Below, in pieces: positions 38,188 to 55,762 of a stretch of DNA of 64,000 bases. Below the pieces are notes generated by a model. It made no database searches and had not been told where the DNA came from. It saw only the letters and a list, made by a program, of their open reading frames with translations. The stretch lies in sequence record MW825358.1. One strand, 5' to 3'. Position 1 is the first letter of the stretch; each line of letters opens with the position of its first letter. The translations under genes and the position numbers were made by a program.

Positions 38188-41103
38188 TTAGGTGGCCGTG
38201 TGCTGAATGAAAGCCACCGACACATCGTCTTGGACACCAATGGTCCCATCGGCCTTGGCAACGGCCTTCTTACGAATAGACAAGCGGGCAGAGTTATCCA
38301 CCAGCGTGACAGCCTCGTAGTTCTCAATACCGCCCAAGCCTGAGACATTCACACCAATGGTATCGCCTGTCACGCGGTTGCGCAGCGCTGAGATAATGGC
38401 CGACATGGTCACTACCGGATTTTGTAACTGCTCGTGAATGACTTCGATAGCCGTGGTGGTCAAGGCTGTACGCAATGCCGCATCGCGGAAAGCGGTGGCC
38501 GAGAGGTAATAGGTGACCGAGAAGGTCTGGGCCGCTTCCATCGAGACCGTCTTATCTTCCATCACCTTGGCATTGATGTTACCCATCGTGGACTTAGGAT
38601 AGAAGAACAAGCTGGTCTTTTCCAGCAGTGAGGACTGGACCGAGGCAATGTCCGTACCCAACCAACCCACCACGGTGGCCGGAATCGAATCCCGGTACTG
38701 AACGGTGGGTAGGTCATCGGAGAACCAATAGGCACCATCGACCAAAAACAGATCGATCTGACGCAGCATCTGACGGGTAGATTCCACCACCGGATTACCG
38801 TCGGCATCCAGTACGACATCCCCTGCGTAATGCTGCATCACCACCTCGCCTTGATCATTCAAGACCGGATCACCCTTAGCGTGTAAGATCACCCAAGAGA
38901 TCTCACCGGTATCAGGATCGGTGGTGTACTCGATAGCGCCGGTGACCGGATCGCGCTGGTAGATGTTCTGACTGTAGACCATGGCCTCATCAGACAGATA
39001 CCGGCGATAATCCTGCGAGCCTGCCACAGAACGCGATGCGGCCCACATCCCTGGCAGAGCCTCACCTAACTTGATGGTCAGTCGCTCATGCATCAGACCA
39101 ATGGCATCAGAAGGCAGGATGTTCGTGCCCATGTCATCATCAATCGTTGAGCGCTCAAAGCCTTCGATCTGCAACTGGTTGGCTGCAAAGTAGACATCAA
39201 AGTCGGTGGTCAAGGCGGTGGCGTACTCACGCACGGTATCATCAAACATCTGGAAGGTAGTGACGATGAGATTGTCATTACCATCCACGTCATACTCAGT
39301 GCCGATCACAAAGGTGTAAACACGTTCGCCTGCTTCAGTCAGACCCGCCAGGCTGCCGTTTTGATAGGCCTGGTTGCGCTCCCCGTATGGAGTGTAACCT
39401 AACTGCACAAAGACCTGGTCATCGTTGAGTTCTTTCCAGGTGGTACCTGATTGCAACACCAAGGTCACCAAGTAGCCTTCTTCGATGCGGCTGATTTGAT
39501 AGCTCTTGACCGACACAGACATAGCCGTGGTGGCATTTTCCGTGATAAAGCTCTTGGACTCGATGGAAGGTGCTTCCAAGTAATACGGGCGATGCTCAAA
39601 CAGATCATTGGTCATGTCCAGCACGTAGTGGAACGGACTGTACAGATACCGGTTCTCATTGATCCGGCGGGCCCGCACGTCCACTGGCAGCGCCTTGAGG
39701 TTATCTACCGTGACTTTGGGCACCACCGAGATCAGACCGTTCAGGTTCTGATACAAAGTGCTGGGCATCAACGTAATGCGATTACCGTTGTCCTTGACCG
39801 TGCTCAACCCCGACAAGGTTGCCATCGAGTTGGTCAGGGTCATCATCGTGCACCCTGCGCCTGAGATCGTGGACTGATCGCTGGGTGCGGGTAAGGAACG
39901 GGTGGCGATATACTGACGGTTAGTGACATTGTCAATATCCAACACCATGTCATAACCCAGATTAGCCAGCGTGGCACCGACCTGTACACGGGTGATCGGT
40001 ACAGAGGGCTTGCCCAATGAGTTGGTGATCACGCGCTCGCGCAGCTCAGCCAGTGACATTGCCGCCCGACCACCGGAGACGGTGGAGTCAGAGAACTGGG
40101 CCAAGGTGGTGAGGGACTTGAAGGCAGACATGTACGCATTGCCGTTAGGCAGGTCCAGATCTCGCCAGGTGGCCACGAACTGATTGGCGCTATAGTCAGA
40201 CAGCACCATCTCCATCGGCCCGCGGGTGGTGTAGATGTCCACACGCAACTCAGAGTTGATCATCCGCAAGGTTTGGTAGATCTGTGGGATTGAGACCGTC
40301 AAGGTCTGTCGATCCACCTGCAGCACCGCGGTGGGTACATTCGGATCAAACACCTGGTCGGTGTGCGTGGTGACCATTTCCACCCAACCTGCACTGGTAG
40401 AGCGATACACCCGGGCGTAATAGAAGTTGTCCGGGAAGGTAAAGGTCTTGCTGACCAGCTGGGACAAGTTGGTGGAAATCTGCTGAGACACAATGTCCAT
40501 CTGCTTGAGCGTAAGCTCAAGCTTTAAGAACCGCGTGCCATTGTAGAGCACTTGGCTGGACGGGACCACGTTAGAGGTCAGGGTCTGCAGCGGGGATAAC
40601 TGGCTGTTGTCAAAGACCACCGACAAGCCACCATGGGGCATGATGCGAATGTTGATCGCATACTGCAAGGTAAAGGCAACATCACCCACCACGATCTTGG
40701 AGTGCTTGGGGATGGTCATCTGCGCAATGCCCGTCGACTCGATATCCACCGCCTTTTGGTAGATCTCATCTAACCCCAAATACAACATGAACTGGGCACT
40801 AGCCGGTTGGGCAAAACGATCCACGTAATCGGCATTGGACATATGCAGATACAGATCATCTTGCGTCATGGCCATCGAGGGGTACTGTCGACGGTTATAG
40901 GCTTCCATCTCCAAGAACAAGGCGGAGGCATTAACCGCGCCAGCCTCGTAGAGATGGATGAACGGATTGGTCGGACTGACGATGTCATAGGTCCCATCCA
41001 GGACCGCTTCTAGCACATCCAAACCCTGACCGATGGCCAGTTCTGGATTTGCCAACATACGACGGGCGTTGGCCAGCCAAACGGCAGTATTAACGTTGGA
41101 CAT
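38188..41103 (-). CDS. Large virion structural protein, probable baseplate wedge (phiKZ gp87-like)
   Basis: 971 aa, beta-rich; VSGGRAAMSLAELRER resembles the gp6/BaseplateJ GG.D.E motif; synteny. Confidence 0.65.
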   Translation of the reverse strand: MSNVNTAVWLANARRMLANPELAIGQGLDVLEAVLDGTYDIVSPTNPFIHLYEAGAVNASALFLEMEAYNRRQYPSMAMTQDDLYLHMSNADYVDRFAQPASAQFMLYLGLDEIYQKAVDIESTGIAQMTIPKHSKIVVGDVAFTLQYAINIRIMPHGGLSVVFDNSQLSPLQTLTSNVVPSSQVLYNGTRFLKLELTLKQMDIVSQQISTNLSQLVSKTFTFPDNFYYARVYRSTSAGWVEMVTTHTDQVFDPNVPTAVLQVDRQTLTVSIPQIYQTLRMINSELRVDIYTTRGPMEMVLSDYSANQFVATWRDLDLPNGNAYMSAFKSLTTLAQFSDSTVSGGRAAMSLAELRERVITNSLGKPSVPITRVQVGATLANLGYDMVLDIDNVTNRQYIATRSLPAPSDQSTISGAGCTMMTLTNSMATLSGLSTVKDNGNRITLMPSTLYQNLNGLISVVPKVTVDNLKALPVDVRARRINENRYLYSPFHYVLDMTNDLFEHRPYYLEAPSIESKSFITENATTAMSVSVKSYQISRIEEGYLVTLVLQSGTTWKELNDDQVFVQLGYTPYGERNQAYQNGSLAGLTEAGERVYTFVIGTEYDVDGNDNLIVTTFQMFDDTVREYATALTTDFDVYFAANQLQIEGFERSTIDDDMGTNILPSDAIGLMHERLTIKLGEALPGMWAASRSVAGSQDYRRYLSDEAMVYSQNIYQRDPVTGAIEYTTDPDTGEISWVILHAKGDPVLNDQGEVVMQHYAGDVVLDADGNPVVESTRQMLRQIDLFLVDGAYWFSDDLPTVQYRDSIPATVVGWLGTDIASVQSSLLEKTSLFFYPKSTMGNINAKVMEDKTVSMEAAQTFSVTYYLSATAFRDAALRTALTTTAIEVIHEQLQNPVVTMSAIISALRNRVTGDTIGVNVSGLGGIENYEAVTLVDNSARLSIRKKAVAKADGTIGVQDDVSVAFIQHTAT

Positions 41104-50546: not shown

Positions 50547-52652
50547 ATGCATATGACCAAGATCTCCAAAGCCCTCCGCTCCATCGCTGCTGCACAGCGT
50601 GTGAGTATGGAGGACGCCACTCCGACCGTGCAGGGTCAGGAAGGCGAGTTGAACGAGGCGGAACTGAAGGAAGTGGCCGACAAGGCCGCAGCTGAAGTTG
50701 CTCCGGCCGAAGGTGAAGGTGAGGCCGCTGAGGCCGCGCAAGATACGCAAGTGGAAGGCCAAGCGCCGACCAGTGATGACGGTGCTGCCAGCGAGGCGGT
50801 GGCCGAAGACGGTACTGCTGCCCCCACCGAAGCGGAACTGCCGACGCTTGATGAAAGCGCGCAGGATCCTGCTGCTGAAGGTGGTGAGATCGAAGCGTCC
50901 GACGTGCCGGCTGAGGACATCCAGACGCCGGCTGAGGCCGAACTGGAAGAAGCCCCGCCTGTTGAGGGCGAAACCGATCCTGCAGCTGAGCTGCCCGCTG
51001 AGCCGGTTGCGGAAATCACCGATACCCCGCCGGCTGCGGAAACCGCACCGGAAGGTGAAGTGGTGGACGAAGCTGCCGCCATTGACGCAGGTGCTGAAGC
51101 TGAAGCCGTGACCCCTGAGGTTGATCCGACCGTGCCGGCCGAGTCAAGCCCCGAAGCGACCCCTGCTGAAACCACCGACGCACCTGCTGCCGAGGTGACT
51201 GAGTCCCCGGCTACCGAGCCGGTGAGTGAAACGAAGGAGGCTGCAGCTCCGGGTCCGAAGACCGATACTTCAGAAGCTGTGCAGGAAGTGGTTGAATTGA
51301 CCGAAGCTCTGGCAGAAGCCAGCAGTGCAGAAGAAGTGGTGCAGCAGGCTCGTACCTTGAGCGATGATCTGACCGATGTGGCTCAGAGCGCTGAGGTGAT
51401 GAATGAAAACGGTGGTGTCTCCCTGGAGTCCCTGACCGGTCTGCGTCTGGCCCTGCGTGCGGCGACCCGTGAGCTGGGTCGTGAGGAAGTCTCCTTAGGC
51501 GTGAGCATGGAGTCCTTTGCCGGTCGTCCGCGCGATGCCCGTGAGCGAGTGTCCCTGGAAGAACTCAACGACCTGATTGCTGAGCTGGATCATGCCCAGC
51601 CGCAGCTGGAGCGTCAGGCAATTGATTCGCTCGATCGTCTGGTGGGTGCCCTGAAGGATGCCCTACCCAGCGCCCTGGAGCGTCTGAAGGCTGTGGTAGC
51701 GCTGGCCGCAGTGTCCAGCGATGAGCGTGAAGGCGGTGCGGTGCAGGTCGATGACGGTCTGGCCAAGGCCCTCAGCGGCGAAGGTGGGATGCCTGAGGAT
51801 CTGGCAAACTTCCTGCAGACCTATGCAGCACTGGGTAATGCCCTGCTGACCGGCTACGCCGATGCAGCCTACCGGGCTGCCAAGGGTGCCTCATTGATGA
51901 CCAATGCGGTGGACTTCTCTTCCATCGAAGCGTTCTGGGAGAAGGTGGGTAAGGTGGTGGACGGGGTGACCGATCCGCGTACGGTGCTGTCCCGCAGTCA
52001 GTTGGAAGCGACCCTACCTGGTGGTGGTCAGCTCTTTGCTTTGCCGGAAGGTGAGATTGAGGCGTCCAACCCGGTGGTCAAGTCGCTGTTTGACTACACC
52101 ACCAACTACGCCCCGCTTGAGGCAACGGTCAGTGCTAACGTTGAGAGCGCTGCGACCTATCCGGCCCTGTCGGCTTCTAAGATCGTGTTGGTGGGTAAGG
52201 CACTGGAAGATGTGCTGTGCATCGATACGATCTGCGAGAAGCTGTGCGAAGGTCAGAAGCTGTGGCCTGAGGCGCAAGATGCCATCCGTCATCTGCGCGA
52301 GAATCTGGCCAATGCGCCGGAGCAGATCGATCAGAGCGCGGGCGCTAACTTCAGCCAGTTGGTTAAGTTCGTGGAAGTCAGCTACTCGCTGGCAACCTGG
52401 CCGCTGCTGAACTACTTGGGGAACCTGGTGTTGACCACCAACGCCTTCGTGCTCTTTGCCGAGCGCGCCCTCAAGGCTGAACCGGCTGCTGCGCCGGAAC
52501 CGGAAGTTGCCGCACTGCCCGTCGAAGGTGAGGCTGTAGCTGAACTCCCGGCGGAACTGACGGGCGATCAACCGTCTGCCGCAGAAGAGGTGGCGACCGA
52601 GCCTGCCGCTCCGGCTGAGCCTGCCGCGGATGCTGATCAGTCCGTTCTGTAA
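50547..52652 (+). CDS. Internal head protein with acidic E/A/P-rich propeptide (phiKZ gp97-like)
   Basis: VSME, VSLES, VSMESF and VSLEE sites. Confidence 0.75.
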   Translation: MHMTKISKALRSIAAAQRVSMEDATPTVQGQEGELNEAELKEVADKAAAEVAPAEGEGEAAEAAQDTQVEGQAPTSDDGAASEAVAEDGTAAPTEAELPTLDESAQDPAAEGGEIEASDVPAEDIQTPAEAELEEAPPVEGETDPAAELPAEPVAEITDTPPAAETAPEGEVVDEAAAIDAGAEAEAVTPEVDPTVPAESSPEATPAETTDAPAAEVTESPATEPVSETKEAAAPGPKTDTSEAVQEVVELTEALAEASSAEEVVQQARTLSDDLTDVAQSAEVMNENGGVSLESLTGLRLALRAATRELGREEVSLGVSMESFAGRPRDARERVSLEELNDLIAELDHAQPQLERQAIDSLDRLVGALKDALPSALERLKAVVALAAVSSDEREGGAVQVDDGLAKALSGEGGMPEDLANFLQTYAALGNALLTGYADAAYRAAKGASLMTNAVDFSSIEAFWEKVGKVVDGVTDPRTVLSRSQLEATLPGGGQLFALPEGEIEASNPVVKSLFDYTTNYAPLEATVSANVESAATYPALSASKIVLVGKALEDVLCIDTICEKLCEGQKLWPEAQDAIRHLRENLANAPEQIDQSAGANFSQLVKFVEVSYSLATWPLLNYLGNLVLTTNAFVLFAERALKAEPAAAPEPEVAALPVEGEAVAELPAELTGDQPSAAEEVATEPAAPAEPAADADQSVL

Positions 52653-52660
52653 AGAAACAA

Positions 52661-52695
52661 CATAGGCAGGGGCCCTTCGGGGCCCCTGCTTTATG
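52661..52695 (+). terminator. UUCG hairpin flanked by CATA/TATG
   Basis: GCAGGGGCCC-TTCG-GGGCCCCTGC. Confidence 0.78.
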
Positions 52696-52831
52696 TCGTT
52701 CTAGTATGTCAATGTATTTCTTCACATCACGTGCACAAAATAGTATTTCTTGACATTTAGGTACCAGAGTGTGGAGAAGGTAAGTCGACATACCGGATCC
52801 GACCCGTTTTAAACCTTCGTAAGGAGTCAAC

Positions 52832-53257
52832 ATGCGACTTTTGAACCTAGGTGGTCAAGATAGCCAGCATAGCCCGCTGGTGATAATGGCCATGGGGGAT
52901 TTGAAGGACGGTGAGGCGTGTTATCATTATCGTGCGAGTCGGGACCATGGGGCGTCAATGTCAGTTGACGGTATGGAAGTAGTTTTCGACAGCAGTGCAC
53001 GCGATAGTGACGCTGAACCAAATGGGGTTTCAATCGACTGTCTTCTAGCGATTTGTGAAGACCAAGCCAAGCAACTCTCAATGGACAATCCCGTCCATCG
53101 AGTGGTGGCAATGCAACTGCTCGCAGCTCGGAGAGCTTTGGCAGTTGAAAGTCAAGGACGTAATATGAGCCCGGTACCTACACTGGGGGAAGCAACAAAC
53201 CTGAGCATTCCAGCCGCCGCACCGGCCAATGTTCAGACAGGGGGATTTAACCATTAG
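52832..53257 (+). CDS. Divergent Tad1-like protein, copy 1
   Basis: YHYRA...VVFD...PNGVSIDCLLAICED; clear paralog of 53301. Confidence 0.55.
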   Translation: MRLLNLGGQDSQHSPLVIMAMGDLKDGEACYHYRASRDHGASMSVDGMEVVFDSSARDSDAEPNGVSIDCLLAICEDQAKQLSMDNPVHRVVAMQLLAARRALAVESQGRNMSPVPTLGEATNLSIPAAAPANVQTGGFNH

Positions 53258-53300
53258 GGGCTACCTTTCCACCTAAGCGATAAAATCCAGAGGTTACACC

Positions 53301-53741
53301 ATGCGCCAGATCCATAGCCACAACGCATACGGCACACACGCCCTGAAGATCACGGCAAACCCGCCGCAGTTCCGTGGCATGCCTTCTCACCAGTATCTGA
53401 TCGAAGGGTTTGATACCACCGAGAACAGCGCAGTTCGTTCCGGCGGCTACGTGCCGCGTTTCCGCAACTTGTCCATCGTGTTTGAAACCGACCAGTCCAA
53501 TCCCGACCGGCCGGATGGAGTCTCGATGGACGCCGTGTTGGCGATCCTGTGCGATCACCTCAACGGCATCCAGTCCGGTCCTAATGCCTCGCAAGGCAAG
53601 CAGATGGCACTGGAGTACATCGAAAGCGCACGTCAGTTGCTGATTGAGGACGCTCAGGTCATGCAGCATGACAACATGTCGCGCTTCAACAATACGCGCT
53701 CGTCCGGGGAAATCCGTTACGCCCAAACCGGCACCCTGTAA
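53301..53741 (+). CDS. Tad1-like (Thoeris anti-defence sponge fold) protein, copy 2
   Basis: SHQYLI...IVF...GVSMDAVLAILCDHLNGIQSGPNAS..KQMALEYIESA aligns with the recalled Tad1 HEYVI...IKFQ...GV..[33 protein letters not shown]. Confidence 0.72.
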   Translation: MRQIHSHNAYGTHALKITANPPQFRGMPSHQYLIEGFDTTENSAVRSGGYVPRFRNLSIVFETDQSNPDRPDGVSMDAVLAILCDHLNGIQSGPNASQGKQMALEYIESARQLLIEDAQVMQHDNMSRFNNTRSSGEIRYAQTGTL

Positions 53742-53748
53742 CAGGCAA

Positions 53749-53790
53749 CGCCCTTCCTCCCGTAGAAAGGAGGAAGGGCGCTTATGCCGT
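53749..53790 (+). terminator. Hairpin followed by TATG
   Basis: CGCCCTTCCTCC/GGAGGAAGGGCG stem. Confidence 0.75.
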
Positions 53791-53892: not shown

Positions 53893-54060
53893 ATGTCAAA
53901 GTTACACAAATACGGACCGACGCTTCTCCGCATTGGTCTTGTCGGTGTGGCCGCCACTGGTGTGGTGATCCTCGCCAATGTGGCATTTTCCAAAATGCTC
54001 GGAGACAGCGAACTGGCTGGTGAGATAGTCAGTGACCTGCTCGATGTAGTGACCAGCTGA
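53893..54060 (+). CDS. 55-aa single-pass membrane protein (absent from the ORF track)
   Basis: MSKLHKYGPTLLRIGLVGVAATGVVILANVAFSKMLGDSELAGEIVSDLLDVVTS*. Confidence 0.7.
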   Translation: MSKLHKYGPTLLRIGLVGVAATGVVILANVAFSKMLGDSELAGEIVSDLLDVVTS

Positions 54061-54121
54061 AGCTTGTAAAGTTCAACAAGAATCCCCCAAGCCCATTCAA
54101 TACGTTGAAGGAAACCAAACC

Positions 54122-54862
54122 ATGAAGTACAAGACTCTGATCGTCTCCAACCTGCTGGCCGTTGCTGCTGTGCAGTATGCTCGCAACTTCAGCCTCCTGT
54201 CCACTGAGCCGGACCAGATCGACCAGGACACCCAGGAGTTTTCGATCACCTATCGTGAAAACGATCGCGACGCCCTGAAGCTGATCGGCACCCGTTTGAG
54301 CGAGCAGTACTTCTCGGTTTCCTTCGCTGGCGACGAGGAGCTGCTGAAGCTGATCGAAACCAACGGCTGGGAATCCAGTGCTCAGGCGGTGTACAACTTC
54401 CTGTCGGCCATCGATCCCAATGGCGTACCCACCGACTTCCAGTTCCACACCTACGACACGCCCGAATACACCGCCCTGGTGGACCAGGATGCGTTCGTGG
54501 AGATCGACGAACTGGAGCAGCTGCTGGGCATCGAGACTGACGATGAAGCCACGCAGGCCACGCTCAACCTGGCCGAGGCGGCACTGGATCAGCTCAATGA
54601 GATGGTCGAAGGCGCAATCCAGGACACGACCGAAGCGGTGGAAGAAGCCGCACACGAAACGGCCGAGATCCTCGAAGAGGCCGTGATTGAGGAAGAAACC
54701 CAGGCTACCAAGCCCGGGCTGTTTAGCCGTGCCTGCCGCTTTGTGGCGAACAGGCGCGTGGCCGCAACCCTGGTCGTCGGTACGGCGGTCGTGGGGATTG
54801 TAGGCGGGCTCCTGCTCAAGGATCGCCTGTCCAGTGCCGGTGTGGAGGTGGACCTTGCTTAA
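54122..54862 (+). CDS. Acidic protein with a C-terminal membrane anchor
   Basis: AAGGA RBS; ATLVVGTAVVGIVGGLLL followed by KDRLSSAGVEVDLA. Confidence 0.78.
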   Translation: MKYKTLIVSNLLAVAAVQYARNFSLLSTEPDQIDQDTQEFSITYRENDRDALKLIGTRLSEQYFSVSFAGDEELLKLIETNGWESSAQAVYNFLSAIDPNGVPTDFQFHTYDTPEYTALVDQDAFVEIDELEQLLGIETDDEATQATLNLAEAALDQLNEMVEGAIQDTTEAVEEAAHETAEILEEAVIEEETQATKPGLFSRACRFVANRRVAATLVVGTAVVGIVGGLLLKDRLSSAGVEVDLA

Positions 54863-54883
54863 CGGCGAGGTCTAACCAAAACA

Positions 54884-54910
54884 ATTTCACCGCTATACTC
54901 TCCTGGTGAA
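54884..54910 (+). promoter_or_regulatory. Putative early promoter
   Basis: ATTTCACCGCTATACTCTCCTGGTGAA. Confidence 0.55.
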
Positions 54911-54972
54911 GTCCGGCAATTAAGAATAAAAGAGACTTCACCAACCATCACTCACCAAGAGGAAATCGCATC

Positions 54973-55110
54973 ATGATCATCAACATCAAGCCCACCACCA
55001 AGTCCGTGATCAAGGAAGTGGCCCGCGTGGCCGCCTGCATGGGCGTCGTCGTGTTCGTCGGCTCCGTTGTCCAGGGCGCTGCTGCCCGGGCCTTCGGATA
55101 CGCCGAGTAA
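54973..55110 (+). CDS. 45-aa membrane protein (absent from the ORF track)
   Basis: GAGGA RBS; MIINIKPTTKSVIKEVARVAACMGVVVFVGSVVQGAAARAFGYAE*. Confidence 0.75.
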   Translation: MIINIKPTTKSVIKEVARVAACMGVVVFVGSVVQGAAARAFGYAE

Positions 55111-55165
55111 CCCTCGCCCCCAAGCCACGCTTCACCACCTCCCTTCCAATCAAAGGTATCGCATC

Positions 55166-55291
55166 ATGAACTTCATCATCCCCAAGACCCCGCTGGGCCA
55201 GCTGGCTGTCGGTTACATCGCTGTGGTGACCGCCCTGTCCACCACGATCTCCGTGGCGGCCATGGCCGGCCACGCTCTGCTGCGCCGCTAA
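55166..55291 (+). CDS. 41-aa membrane protein
   Basis: AAAGGT RBS; MNFIIPKTPLGQLAVGYIAVVTALSTTISVAAMAGHALLRR*. Confidence 0.75.
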   Translation: MNFIIPKTPLGQLAVGYIAVVTALSTTISVAAMAGHALLRR

Positions 55292-55414
55292 ATCTGGAGG
55301 CCTGCTGTGAAGGACCGAGTGCAACACACGGCTCGGTCCTCCAGTGAGGCCGAGCAGATCTTCAACAACAGCTTCAACCATCGCCCCACTCATTCATTCC
55401 AAGGAAAACATCGC

Positions 55415-55762
55415 ATGAACACCAACTCCAACGCCGCCCAGAACATCAACAACGACACCCTGTCCGACATCGACCGCGCCGCTACTGCCGCGCGCCTGCA
55501 GGCCGAGATCGACGAGCGCCAGGAACAGCTCAACAAGCTGCGCAGCGAGAACGATGCCAACGCCACCGGCGCCTCCAACGTGGCCAGCGAGCTGCGCAAG
55601 GGCAACAAGCTGCGTACCTTCCGCCGCGTGCTGGGCTGGACGGCCGGCGTGGGCGTGGTCGCCGTCGGTGCGGCCTACGTGATCGGTCGTGTCCGCGCCG
55701 CTGGCGTGGAAGTGCCGGTGGGCGAGGCCATCGACGCGGCCATCGACGCGGTCGGCAACTAA
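55415..55762 (+). CDS. 115-aa coiled-coil protein with a C-terminal membrane anchor
   Basis: AAGGA RBS before ATG 55415; VLGWTAGVGVVAVGAAYVIG then RVRAAGVEV. Confidence 0.78.
   Translation: MNTNSNAAQNINNDTLSDIDRAATAARLQAEIDERQEQLNKLRSENDANATGASNVASELRKGNKLRTFRRVLGWTAGVGVVAVGAAYVIGRVRAAGVEVPVGEAIDAAIDAVGN

Follow-up and report, generated by a model that had tools for sequence, protein, structure and literature searches.

A tandem pair of Tad1-like genes with replaced ligand contacts in the nucleus-forming Xanthomonas phage LucasX

Two adjacent genes, LUCX_114 and LUCX_115, are found in a 64,000-nucleotide stretch of DNA (the window) that matches bases 62001-126000 of the genome of Xanthomonas phage vB_XciM_LucasX (MW825358.1; 305,651 bp) with 100% identity. 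LucasX has X. citri 306 as its host, and a published chimallivirus phylogeny places it among the nucleus-forming phages. Both genes lie on the plus strand, LUCX_114 (open reading frame 1, ORF1) at window positions 52832-53257 and LUCX_115 (ORF2) at 53301-53741, and their products of 141 and 146 amino acids (aa) are each recorded as a 'hypothetical protein'. In other phages, Tad1-family proteins assemble into oligomers (dimers, or hexamers that are trimers of dimers) and act as sponges for the nucleotides with which bacteria signal in immunity. An original prediction, made from the DNA letters and their translations, placed two ORFs at these positions in a phage with shell-protected DNA and read them as tandem Tad1-like sponges with altered pockets; both the positions and the nucleus-forming context are borne out. 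Based on our analysis, LUCX_115 is a full-length, short-form Tad1-fold protein and LUCX_114 a strongly diverged paralog, and the two are almost certainly members of the Tad1-fold family.

The relationship of ORF2 to Tad1 emerges when its relatives are brought into the comparison. Neither ORF was matched in scans of Pfam, even at an E-value of 10, or of NCBIfam. In PHROG, ORF2 reached only two families of unknown function, at a borderline E of ~7e-4, and as a single sequence against the PDB it matched gp184 of phage phiKZ at E 0.01 and Tad1 chains at E ~1. Four close relatives were all that a word-indexed protein search returned for ORF2, and for ORF1 it returned nothing; because it yielded so few, an exhaustive hidden Markov model (HMM) search was needed, and with a 5-member clade profile it retrieved 252 cluster representatives at E <= 1e-3. 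Against the PDB, this 5-sequence profile matched gp184 at 2.5e-6 and Tad1 at 0.06, while a 97-sequence profile of short family members matched residues 102-227 of gp184 at E 4.9e-29, CbTad1 (8kbg, 7uav, 8kbh and 8kbe) over its full length at E ~5e-23, and CmTad1 (8kbb) at E 3.9e-18. As a control for circularity, an HMM built from the 90 family members outside the LucasX clade was run on the 813 six-frame ORFs of the window, where it found ORF2 at E 7.7e-34. Judged by these sequence comparisons, the likeness of ORF2 to Tad1 is far beyond chance once relatives are included, and the core alignment with Tad1 that had been proposed for it stands. The columns that ORF2 keeps in the fold core are Y32, F61, G73, L80, A81, D85, L87, Q91, G93, A103, A110 and L114. 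The Pfam model PF24729 (Acb2_Tad1_hairpin), which groups an Acb2/Tad1 hairpin domain, was detected in neither ORF1 nor ORF2; because only 10 of the 97 family members match it at E 0.01, this model is narrow.

Structure prediction for ORF2 agrees with the profile searches. Modelled by AlphaFold2 with a deep alignment (predicted local distance difference test score (pLDDT) 89.9, predicted template modelling (TM) score 0.76), ORF2 has four strands (residues 2-5, 16-19, 31-35 and 56-61) followed by two long helices (76-92 and 98-134), the arrangement of the Tad1 fold. The top 20 Foldseek matches of this model in the PDB are all Tad1 (probability 1.00, TM up to 0.75), with E-values of 2.7e-6 to 1e-5 for CbTad1 and 1e-4 to 9e-4 for CmTad1, and the first match that is not Tad1 appears at E 0.43. 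The original prediction had named failure to obtain a Tad1 fold as grounds for abandoning it; for ORF2 that fold is what was found. Matches of the model in BFVD include proteins named for the Acb2/Tad1 hairpin domain and others named 'ABC transporter ATPase'. The alignment behind the model consists mostly of canonical relatives, so that the fine detail of its pocket is unreliable. A model built from the 5-sequence alignment had a pLDDT of 51 and was set aside. The public BFVD model of LUCX_115 (A0A8E5K6Y1) departs from the deep-alignment model by a root-mean-square deviation of 17 Å, and structure-based surveys would miss the relationship between LUCX_115 and Tad1, probably because public and shallow-alignment models are poor.

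ORF1 has diverged much further, having no match in PHROG or in a single-sequence search of the PDB either. BLASTP aligns it with ORF2 at 27% identity over 74 aa (E 3e-5), and the family HMM built without the LucasX clade finds it at E 2.1e-10 over HMM positions 1-93. That match covers the beta-sheet and the first helix; the second helix is added by profile-profile comparison, in which hhalign paired an alignment of six ORF1 orthologs with the family at 98.6% probability and E 1.1e-15 across ORF1 residues 1-110, both helices included. The loop between the helices is shortened in ORF1, the Q-x-G-P columns are absent (S83 and a gap), and the C-terminal Arg-rich lid region is lacking, with no match to the C-terminal region of the family. 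ORF1 is accordingly the more divergent paralog without the Q-x-G-P loop, as had been supposed. Beyond the pair, the 4008 six-frame ORFs of the 305-kb LucasX genome include no Tad1-like ORF, whether canonical or of the gp184-like long form. One 61-aa ORF at 39075-39257 on the plus strand matched the family HMM weakly (E ~1e-3) in the region of the second helix; since it runs antisense to a 971-aa gene (38188-41103) that contains it, the match was rejected as chance.

The pocket of Tad1 has been defined by mutation of CbTad1, in which F82, N92, R109 and R113 contact glyco-cyclic ADP-ribose (gcADPR) and 2',3'-cyclic GMP-AMP (2',3'-cGAMP), and the F82A/N92A or R109A/R113A exchanges severely cut the binding of both (bioRxiv 10.1101/2023.11.15.567273). 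In the same protein, R90 and T97 are contacts for cyclic trinucleotides (CTN) and for the hexamer, and R90A or T97A markedly lowers binding of cyclic triadenylate (cA3) (bioRxiv 10.1101/2023.11.15.567273). We mapped these positions through an alignment of CbTad1 to the family profile and hmmalign, taking the 90 members outside the LucasX clade for comparison. Among the four contacts for gcADPR and cyclic dinucleotides (CDN), F82 corresponds to I90 in ORF2 and L82 in ORF1 (F in 59 of the 90), N92 to K100 and R90 (N in 67), R109 to D117 in ORF2 and a gap in ORF1 (R in 75), and R113 to M121 and again a gap (R in 49). At the CTN and hexamer contacts, which are variable among the other 90, R90 is replaced by Q98 in ORF2 and V88 in ORF1 (elsewhere E in 20, R in 15) and T97 by E105 and M94 (elsewhere E in 22, T in 11). 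All six published contacts are thus substituted in ORF2, and in ORF1 they are substituted or absent.

The loss of the canonical pocket extends to the clade. Its members keep none of the four gcADPR/CDN residues and carry the signature x-K-[D/E]-x, the exception being P0007, which has an Arg at the R113 position (one of four); at the R109 position the charge is reversed, with D or E in six of seven clade members. Across 155 sampled family proteins, all four pocket residues are present in 93 and none in 18 (P0017 and P0019 are examples from clades other than that of LucasX), in a sample that was ranked by similarity to the LucasX clade and in which variants are therefore over-represented; the authors of the CbTad1 work estimated that 12% of homologs are substituted at this site (bioRxiv 10.1101/2023.11.15.567273). 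The absence of R90 and T97 says less, since only 13 of the 155 have both R and T. The particular exchanges that had been proposed are also confirmed by the mapping: the F, Q, x and G columns (F, Q and G conserved at 96%, 82% and 80%) read F61-E62-T63-D64 in ORF2, REN (CbTad1 R90-E91-N92) has become Q98-G99-K100, the C-terminal arginines are replaced as above, and the C-terminal end of ORF2 is longer, making the extended tail.

In place of the canonical contacts, the clade has basic residues of its own. There are 14 positions conserved in the LucasX clade and rare elsewhere in the family, six of them basic (R25, R46, R53, R55, K100 and R111), and the loop between strands 3 and 4 is a conserved Arg-rich loop specific to the clade. 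ORF1 has Arg at the positions of R46, R111 and K100 of ORF2. These alignments are most simply explained if remodelling of the pocket preceded the duplication, the new basic residues being important in ORF1 and ORF2 alike.

The pair is conserved among related phages. A gene of the ORF1 type followed by one of the ORF2 type is found at one syntenic site in eight genomes or contigs, namely LucasX, Xanthomonas phage RTH11 and six metagenomic contigs of ~9 to 314 kb (L010, L012, L013, L014, L015 and L016), and all 16 genes are intact. The next outgroup (L017) has one copy at that site, and the signature of this copy (P0009) is already non-canonical. Proportions of non-synonymous differences in the paired genes are about half of the synonymous ones, and the ratio of non-synonymous to synonymous rates in unsaturated pairs is 0.13-0.44, indicating purifying selection. 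ORF1 (ratio about 0.2-0.4) evolves faster than ORF2, with a median identity of 48% vs 57%.

The two genes together are bounded by GC-rich hairpins on the plus strand. The upstream one (52666-52689; 10-bp stem, 4-nt loop, -31.5 kcal/mol, z -7.2) ends LUCX_113, is listed in the record among the ARNold terminators and is followed by TTTATG (TATG at 52692-52695); hairpin and TTTATG are conserved in six relatives. The downstream one (53749-53780; 12-bp stem, 8-nt loop, -30.1 kcal/mol, z -4.3) closes the two-gene unit and is followed by CTTATG (TATG at 53783-53786), with no terminator annotated there in the GenBank record. The 43-nt spacer between the ORFs (53258-53300, plus strand) has a Shine-Dalgarno-like AGAGG at 53289-53293, and neither folding (z +0.45) nor a genome-wide hairpin scan revealed a hairpin in it. 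Because the spacer is free of hairpins, ORF1 and ORF2 are probably co-transcribed. The two genes had been described beforehand as a hairpin-bounded operon, and this too holds, both bounding hairpins being real and the spacer unstructured.

Such hairpins are a generic punctuation of LucasX. The genome has 111 GC-rich perfect hairpin sites, and TATG occurs within 9 nt in 103 of the 222 strand instances (46%), against a background of 1.5%, often on both strands. The late promoters used by the non-virion RNA polymerase of phiKZ have TATG as their motif, and transcription starts at its G (PMC4666361). Hairpin and TATG together may form a combined terminator and promoter mark for a phage RNA polymerase; they hint at transcription of the non-virion-polymerase type in LucasX and cannot date the LUCX_114/LUCX_115 unit. 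Within the 137-nt leader of ORF1 there is in addition a conserved stem-loop on the plus strand (52773-52800) that precedes the ORF1 start by ~30-60 nt and whose loop has an invariant TCGA core. RNAalifold on six relatives gives it a helix of nine pairs with compensatory changes in four. The stem-loop occurs nowhere else in the 305-kb genome and could be a signal for translation or processing of the pair. A 19-nt block of the leader occurs once in the window and is not enriched genome-wide. We rejected the leader motifs as a recurring promoter, as their genome-wide counts are near expectation and they are thus specific to the locus.

The surroundings of the pair are conserved and are those of a virion module. 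On the 5' side, relatives have two phiKZ_IP-like genes and then a protein of ~640-840 aa; on the 3' side follow small hydrophobic proteins, a 553-aa PHROG-3289 protein and head-tail joining genes. In LucasX, the phiKZ_IP internal head protein family is matched by LUCX_111 at 1e-17 and weakly by LUCX_112. The next gene, LUCX_113 (50553-52652), encodes 699 aa, with a long acidic low-complexity stretch rich in Ala, Glu, Pro and Thr over its N-terminal third and no match in Pfam or PHROG. Its position directly 3' of the two phiKZ_IP-like genes is kept in synteny (640-836 aa in relatives), and because it adjoins them there, LUCX_113 may be a further internal head protein, or one that is ejected. 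Beyond the pair, LUCX_116 to LUCX_120 (53893-55762) are five small ORFs of 41-246 aa, most with one hydrophobic and probably membrane-spanning segment; comparable small genes occupy this place in all relatives, and a family scan of two of the five gave no matches.

Compared with Tad1 proteins of known structure (CbTad1 in 7UAV, 7UAW, 8SMD and 8KBE-8KBH; CmTad1 in 8KBB-8KBD; also SBSphiJ7 Tad1), ORF2 is alike in belonging to the short, free-standing class of ~125-145 aa, in its beta-sheet and two long helices and in its homology over the full profile. It differs in the replacement of all four gcADPR/CDN and both CTN contacts, in the Arg-rich strand 3-4 loop and longer C-terminal tail of its clade, and in being one half of a conserved tandem with a more diverged paralog in a nucleus-forming Xanthomonas jumbo phage. 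The pair therefore belongs to Tad1 as a fold family, while the residues by which a gcADPR, CDN or CTN sponge is defined functionally are not there.

By sequence, the closest solved relative of ORF2 is phiKZ gp184 (8Y6V chain I), and both come from chimalliviruses and from a context of virion genes. The structure of gp184 was determined as that of a minor component in the inner vertex-binding complex of phiKZ (PMC11297242). The protein has since been described as a Tad1 with its N-terminus wedged in the capsid, from which the head protease releases the C-terminal portion for injection, and no anti-defence protein other than Tad1 has so far been described in jumbo phages (PMC13282480). Unlike ORF2, gp184 is a 230-aa long form. 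Residue 1 of ORF2 aligns with residue 101 of gp184, so that ORF2 corresponds to the C-terminal Tad1 domain (101-227) and has no counterpart of the first ~100 aa with the capsid anchor; its stop-to-stop frame opens only eight codons before the ATG, leaving no room for an N-terminal extension. The proteins also differ in the pocket: gp184 has Asn and both arginines there, with an aromatic residue at the remaining gcADPR position, and ORF2 has none of the four. Long forms (150-455 aa) make up 58 of the best 150 of the 252 family representatives, usually with the Tad1 domain C-terminal as in gp184 and with the canonical pocket intact in 48 of them (P0022, P0038, P0059, P0062 and P0105 are examples among the long forms); N-terminally extended and possibly packaged Tad1 proteins may thus be common. 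A Tad1 in a chimallivirus is already known from phiKZ. What is new in LucasX is the short form without the N-terminal extension, the replacement of the whole set of validated contacts and the conserved tandem paralog.

The nearest named phage homologs outside the clade are gp79c of Agrobacterium phage OLIVR5 (L009:4001-4402) and its relatives (tblastn ~33% identity, E 1e-9 to 1e-10), which are likewise short forms. In contrast to ORF2, gp79c is a canonical family member (family HMM 1.3e-55), present in a single copy, with no paralog in tandem, among replication and recombination genes. Both gp79c and A0A6B7ZEW3 of Klebsiella phage N1M2, also of the canonical Tad1 family, bear the label 'ABC transporter ATPase', the same name that the depositor gave to PDB entry 7UAV; on Tad1-family phage genes this label is a propagated misnomer. 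Acb2 and Tad2 share the logic proposed here, being small oligomeric phage sponges whose ligand spectra shift between homologs (PMC12393519), and no search with ORF1 or ORF2 gave a match to either, by sequence or by fold.

How might the LucasX pair function? We tentatively favour a cytoplasmic small-molecule sponge of altered specificity, in which ORF2 acts singly or is joined by ORF1 as a second subunit, and give this close to an even chance. Under this proposal, LUCX_114 and LUCX_115 would be made from one hairpin-bounded transcript as free-standing short forms. The canonical gcADPR/CDN pocket and CTN site having been replaced and other basic residues, three of them common to both paralogs, having been kept, the sponge would capture a small-molecule messenger with altered specificity, ORF1 being a possible partner subunit. 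It would thereby protect a phage whose DNA is shielded in the nucleus and which would still be exposed to signal-activated abortive-infection effectors. The oligomerisation, the ligand binding, the identity of the ligand, the anti-defence role and the expression time in this scheme are what we infer.

Several points weigh against a sponge of this kind. The literature searched contains no report of nucleotide binding, of oligomers or of Thoeris or CBASS (cyclic-oligonucleotide-based anti-phage signalling system) inhibition for the LucasX clade. Among 20 Tad1 homologs that have been screened, inhibition was seen of CBASS and type I Thoeris only, and 19 of 84 sponge homologs tested inhibited none of seven defence systems (PMC12393519). 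R109 and R113, the phosphate-binding arginines of helix 2, are both lost in ORF2, one of them to an acidic residue, which could mean that nucleotide binding has been lost and not rewired. As to ORF1, its clade profile retrieved only chance matches from the PDB, with no Tad1 among them, and its Tad1 fold is presumed from profile-profile sequence alignment only. Finally, the pair lies inside a virion and internal-head-protein module, 3' of a TATG like that of phiKZ late promoters, a position that suits late expression no less than early action in the cytoplasm.

The last point leads to another view: synthesis would be late, and the proteins would enter the capsid along with the internal head proteins and reach the next host by ejection, either as a pre-made sponge or as a minor capsid component; this is compatible with a sponge or with a structural role. 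Because gp184 is already known as a packaged and injected Tad1, the novelty of the LucasX pair is lower and delivery by the virion comes into consideration. The top PDB match of ORF2 by sequence is after all a capsid vertex-complex protein (PMC11297242) that is described as capsid-wedged, protease-released and injected (PMC13282480), the synteny with LUCX_111 and LUCX_112 upstream and the head-tail joining genes downstream is conserved, and the unit begins right after a hairpin with the phiKZ late-promoter motif. However, ORF2 lacks the ~100-aa N-terminal part that is described as wedging gp184 into the capsid, and its frame, open for only eight codons more upstream, does not supply it. Among the long forms, moreover, a canonical pocket prevails (48 of 58), whereas the LucasX clade is a short form without it; TATG follows 46% of the hairpins of the genome, on either strand, and so says little about the timing of this unit; and the LucasX paper reports no virion proteome. 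On balance we regard virion delivery as unlikely.

A Tad1 fold that has lost small-molecule binding and whose scaffold has been reused, for instance to bind a host or phage protein, would account for the replacement of six of six validated contacts, for the charge reversal at the R109 position in six of seven clade members and for the missing C-terminal lid of ORF1, and the homologs inactive against all seven defence systems (PMC12393519) would be in keeping with it. On the other hand, the clade has retained six basic residues seldom seen in the rest of the family, and ORF1 has three of these in common with it, as expected of a relocated anion-binding site; the residues of the fold core and first helix are kept. 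Strong purifying selection shows that the pair has a function and does not tell this reading from a sponge. Such a new use of the fold seems to us improbable. Still less likely, and in our view a long shot, is an ordinary Tad1 that binds gcADPR, the cyclic oligonucleotides of CBASS or both through alternative contacts. The overall fold and, in ORF2, the Q-x-G-P loop are kept and homologs are known to differ in their ligand spectra (bioRxiv 10.1101/2023.11.15.567273), but in CbTad1 single or double mutations already reduce binding markedly or severely (bioRxiv 10.1101/2023.11.15.567273) and ORF2 differs at all six positions at once.

A bolder form of the favoured sponge proposal is that LUCX_114 and LUCX_115 together make a Tad1-derived hetero-oligomeric sponge, with a relocated, Arg-lined pocket for a messenger that is outside the known Tad1 spectrum and possibly new in Xanthomonadaceae defence. 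We consider this speculative and rather doubtful. If true, the pair could be used as a structural 'bait' for the messenger, in the way that Tad1 was for gcADPR and MoTad2 for histidine-ADP-ribose (His-ADPR).

LucasX also encodes a nicotinamide adenine dinucleotide (NAD) salvage pair, located outside the window at record positions 139407-141959. LUCX_150 is a NadM-Nudix protein (bifunctional nicotinamide mononucleotide adenylyltransferase/Nudix; NCBIfam NF003788, 1e-176) and the adjoining LUCX_151 a phosphoribosyltransferase (NF006629, 1.4e-197), both at or above the NCBIfam cut-offs. Pairs of this kind would compensate for the action of NAD-depleting defences. Its presence fits pressure from NAD-depleting, signal-activated defences and proves nothing about LUCX_114 and LUCX_115; it is possible that the salvage pair is a second counter-measure of LucasX to Thoeris-type immunity.

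Whatever the pair does, 'Tad1-like protein, non-canonical pocket' can take the place of both 'hypothetical protein' labels at the locus. The known Tad1 of jumbo phages is a packaged long form with a canonical pocket; in contrast, the present lineage of Xanthomonas-type chimalliviruses has a conserved pair of short-form paralogs in which the contacts have been exchanged. If the pair is no longer a sponge, it would be a case of the sponge fold being recruited for another task. If it is still a sponge, it would extend the ligand range of the Tad1 family, would be without precedent as a paired or hetero-oligomeric sponge and would indicate that signalling defence is relevant to nucleus-forming phages of plant-associated bacteria.

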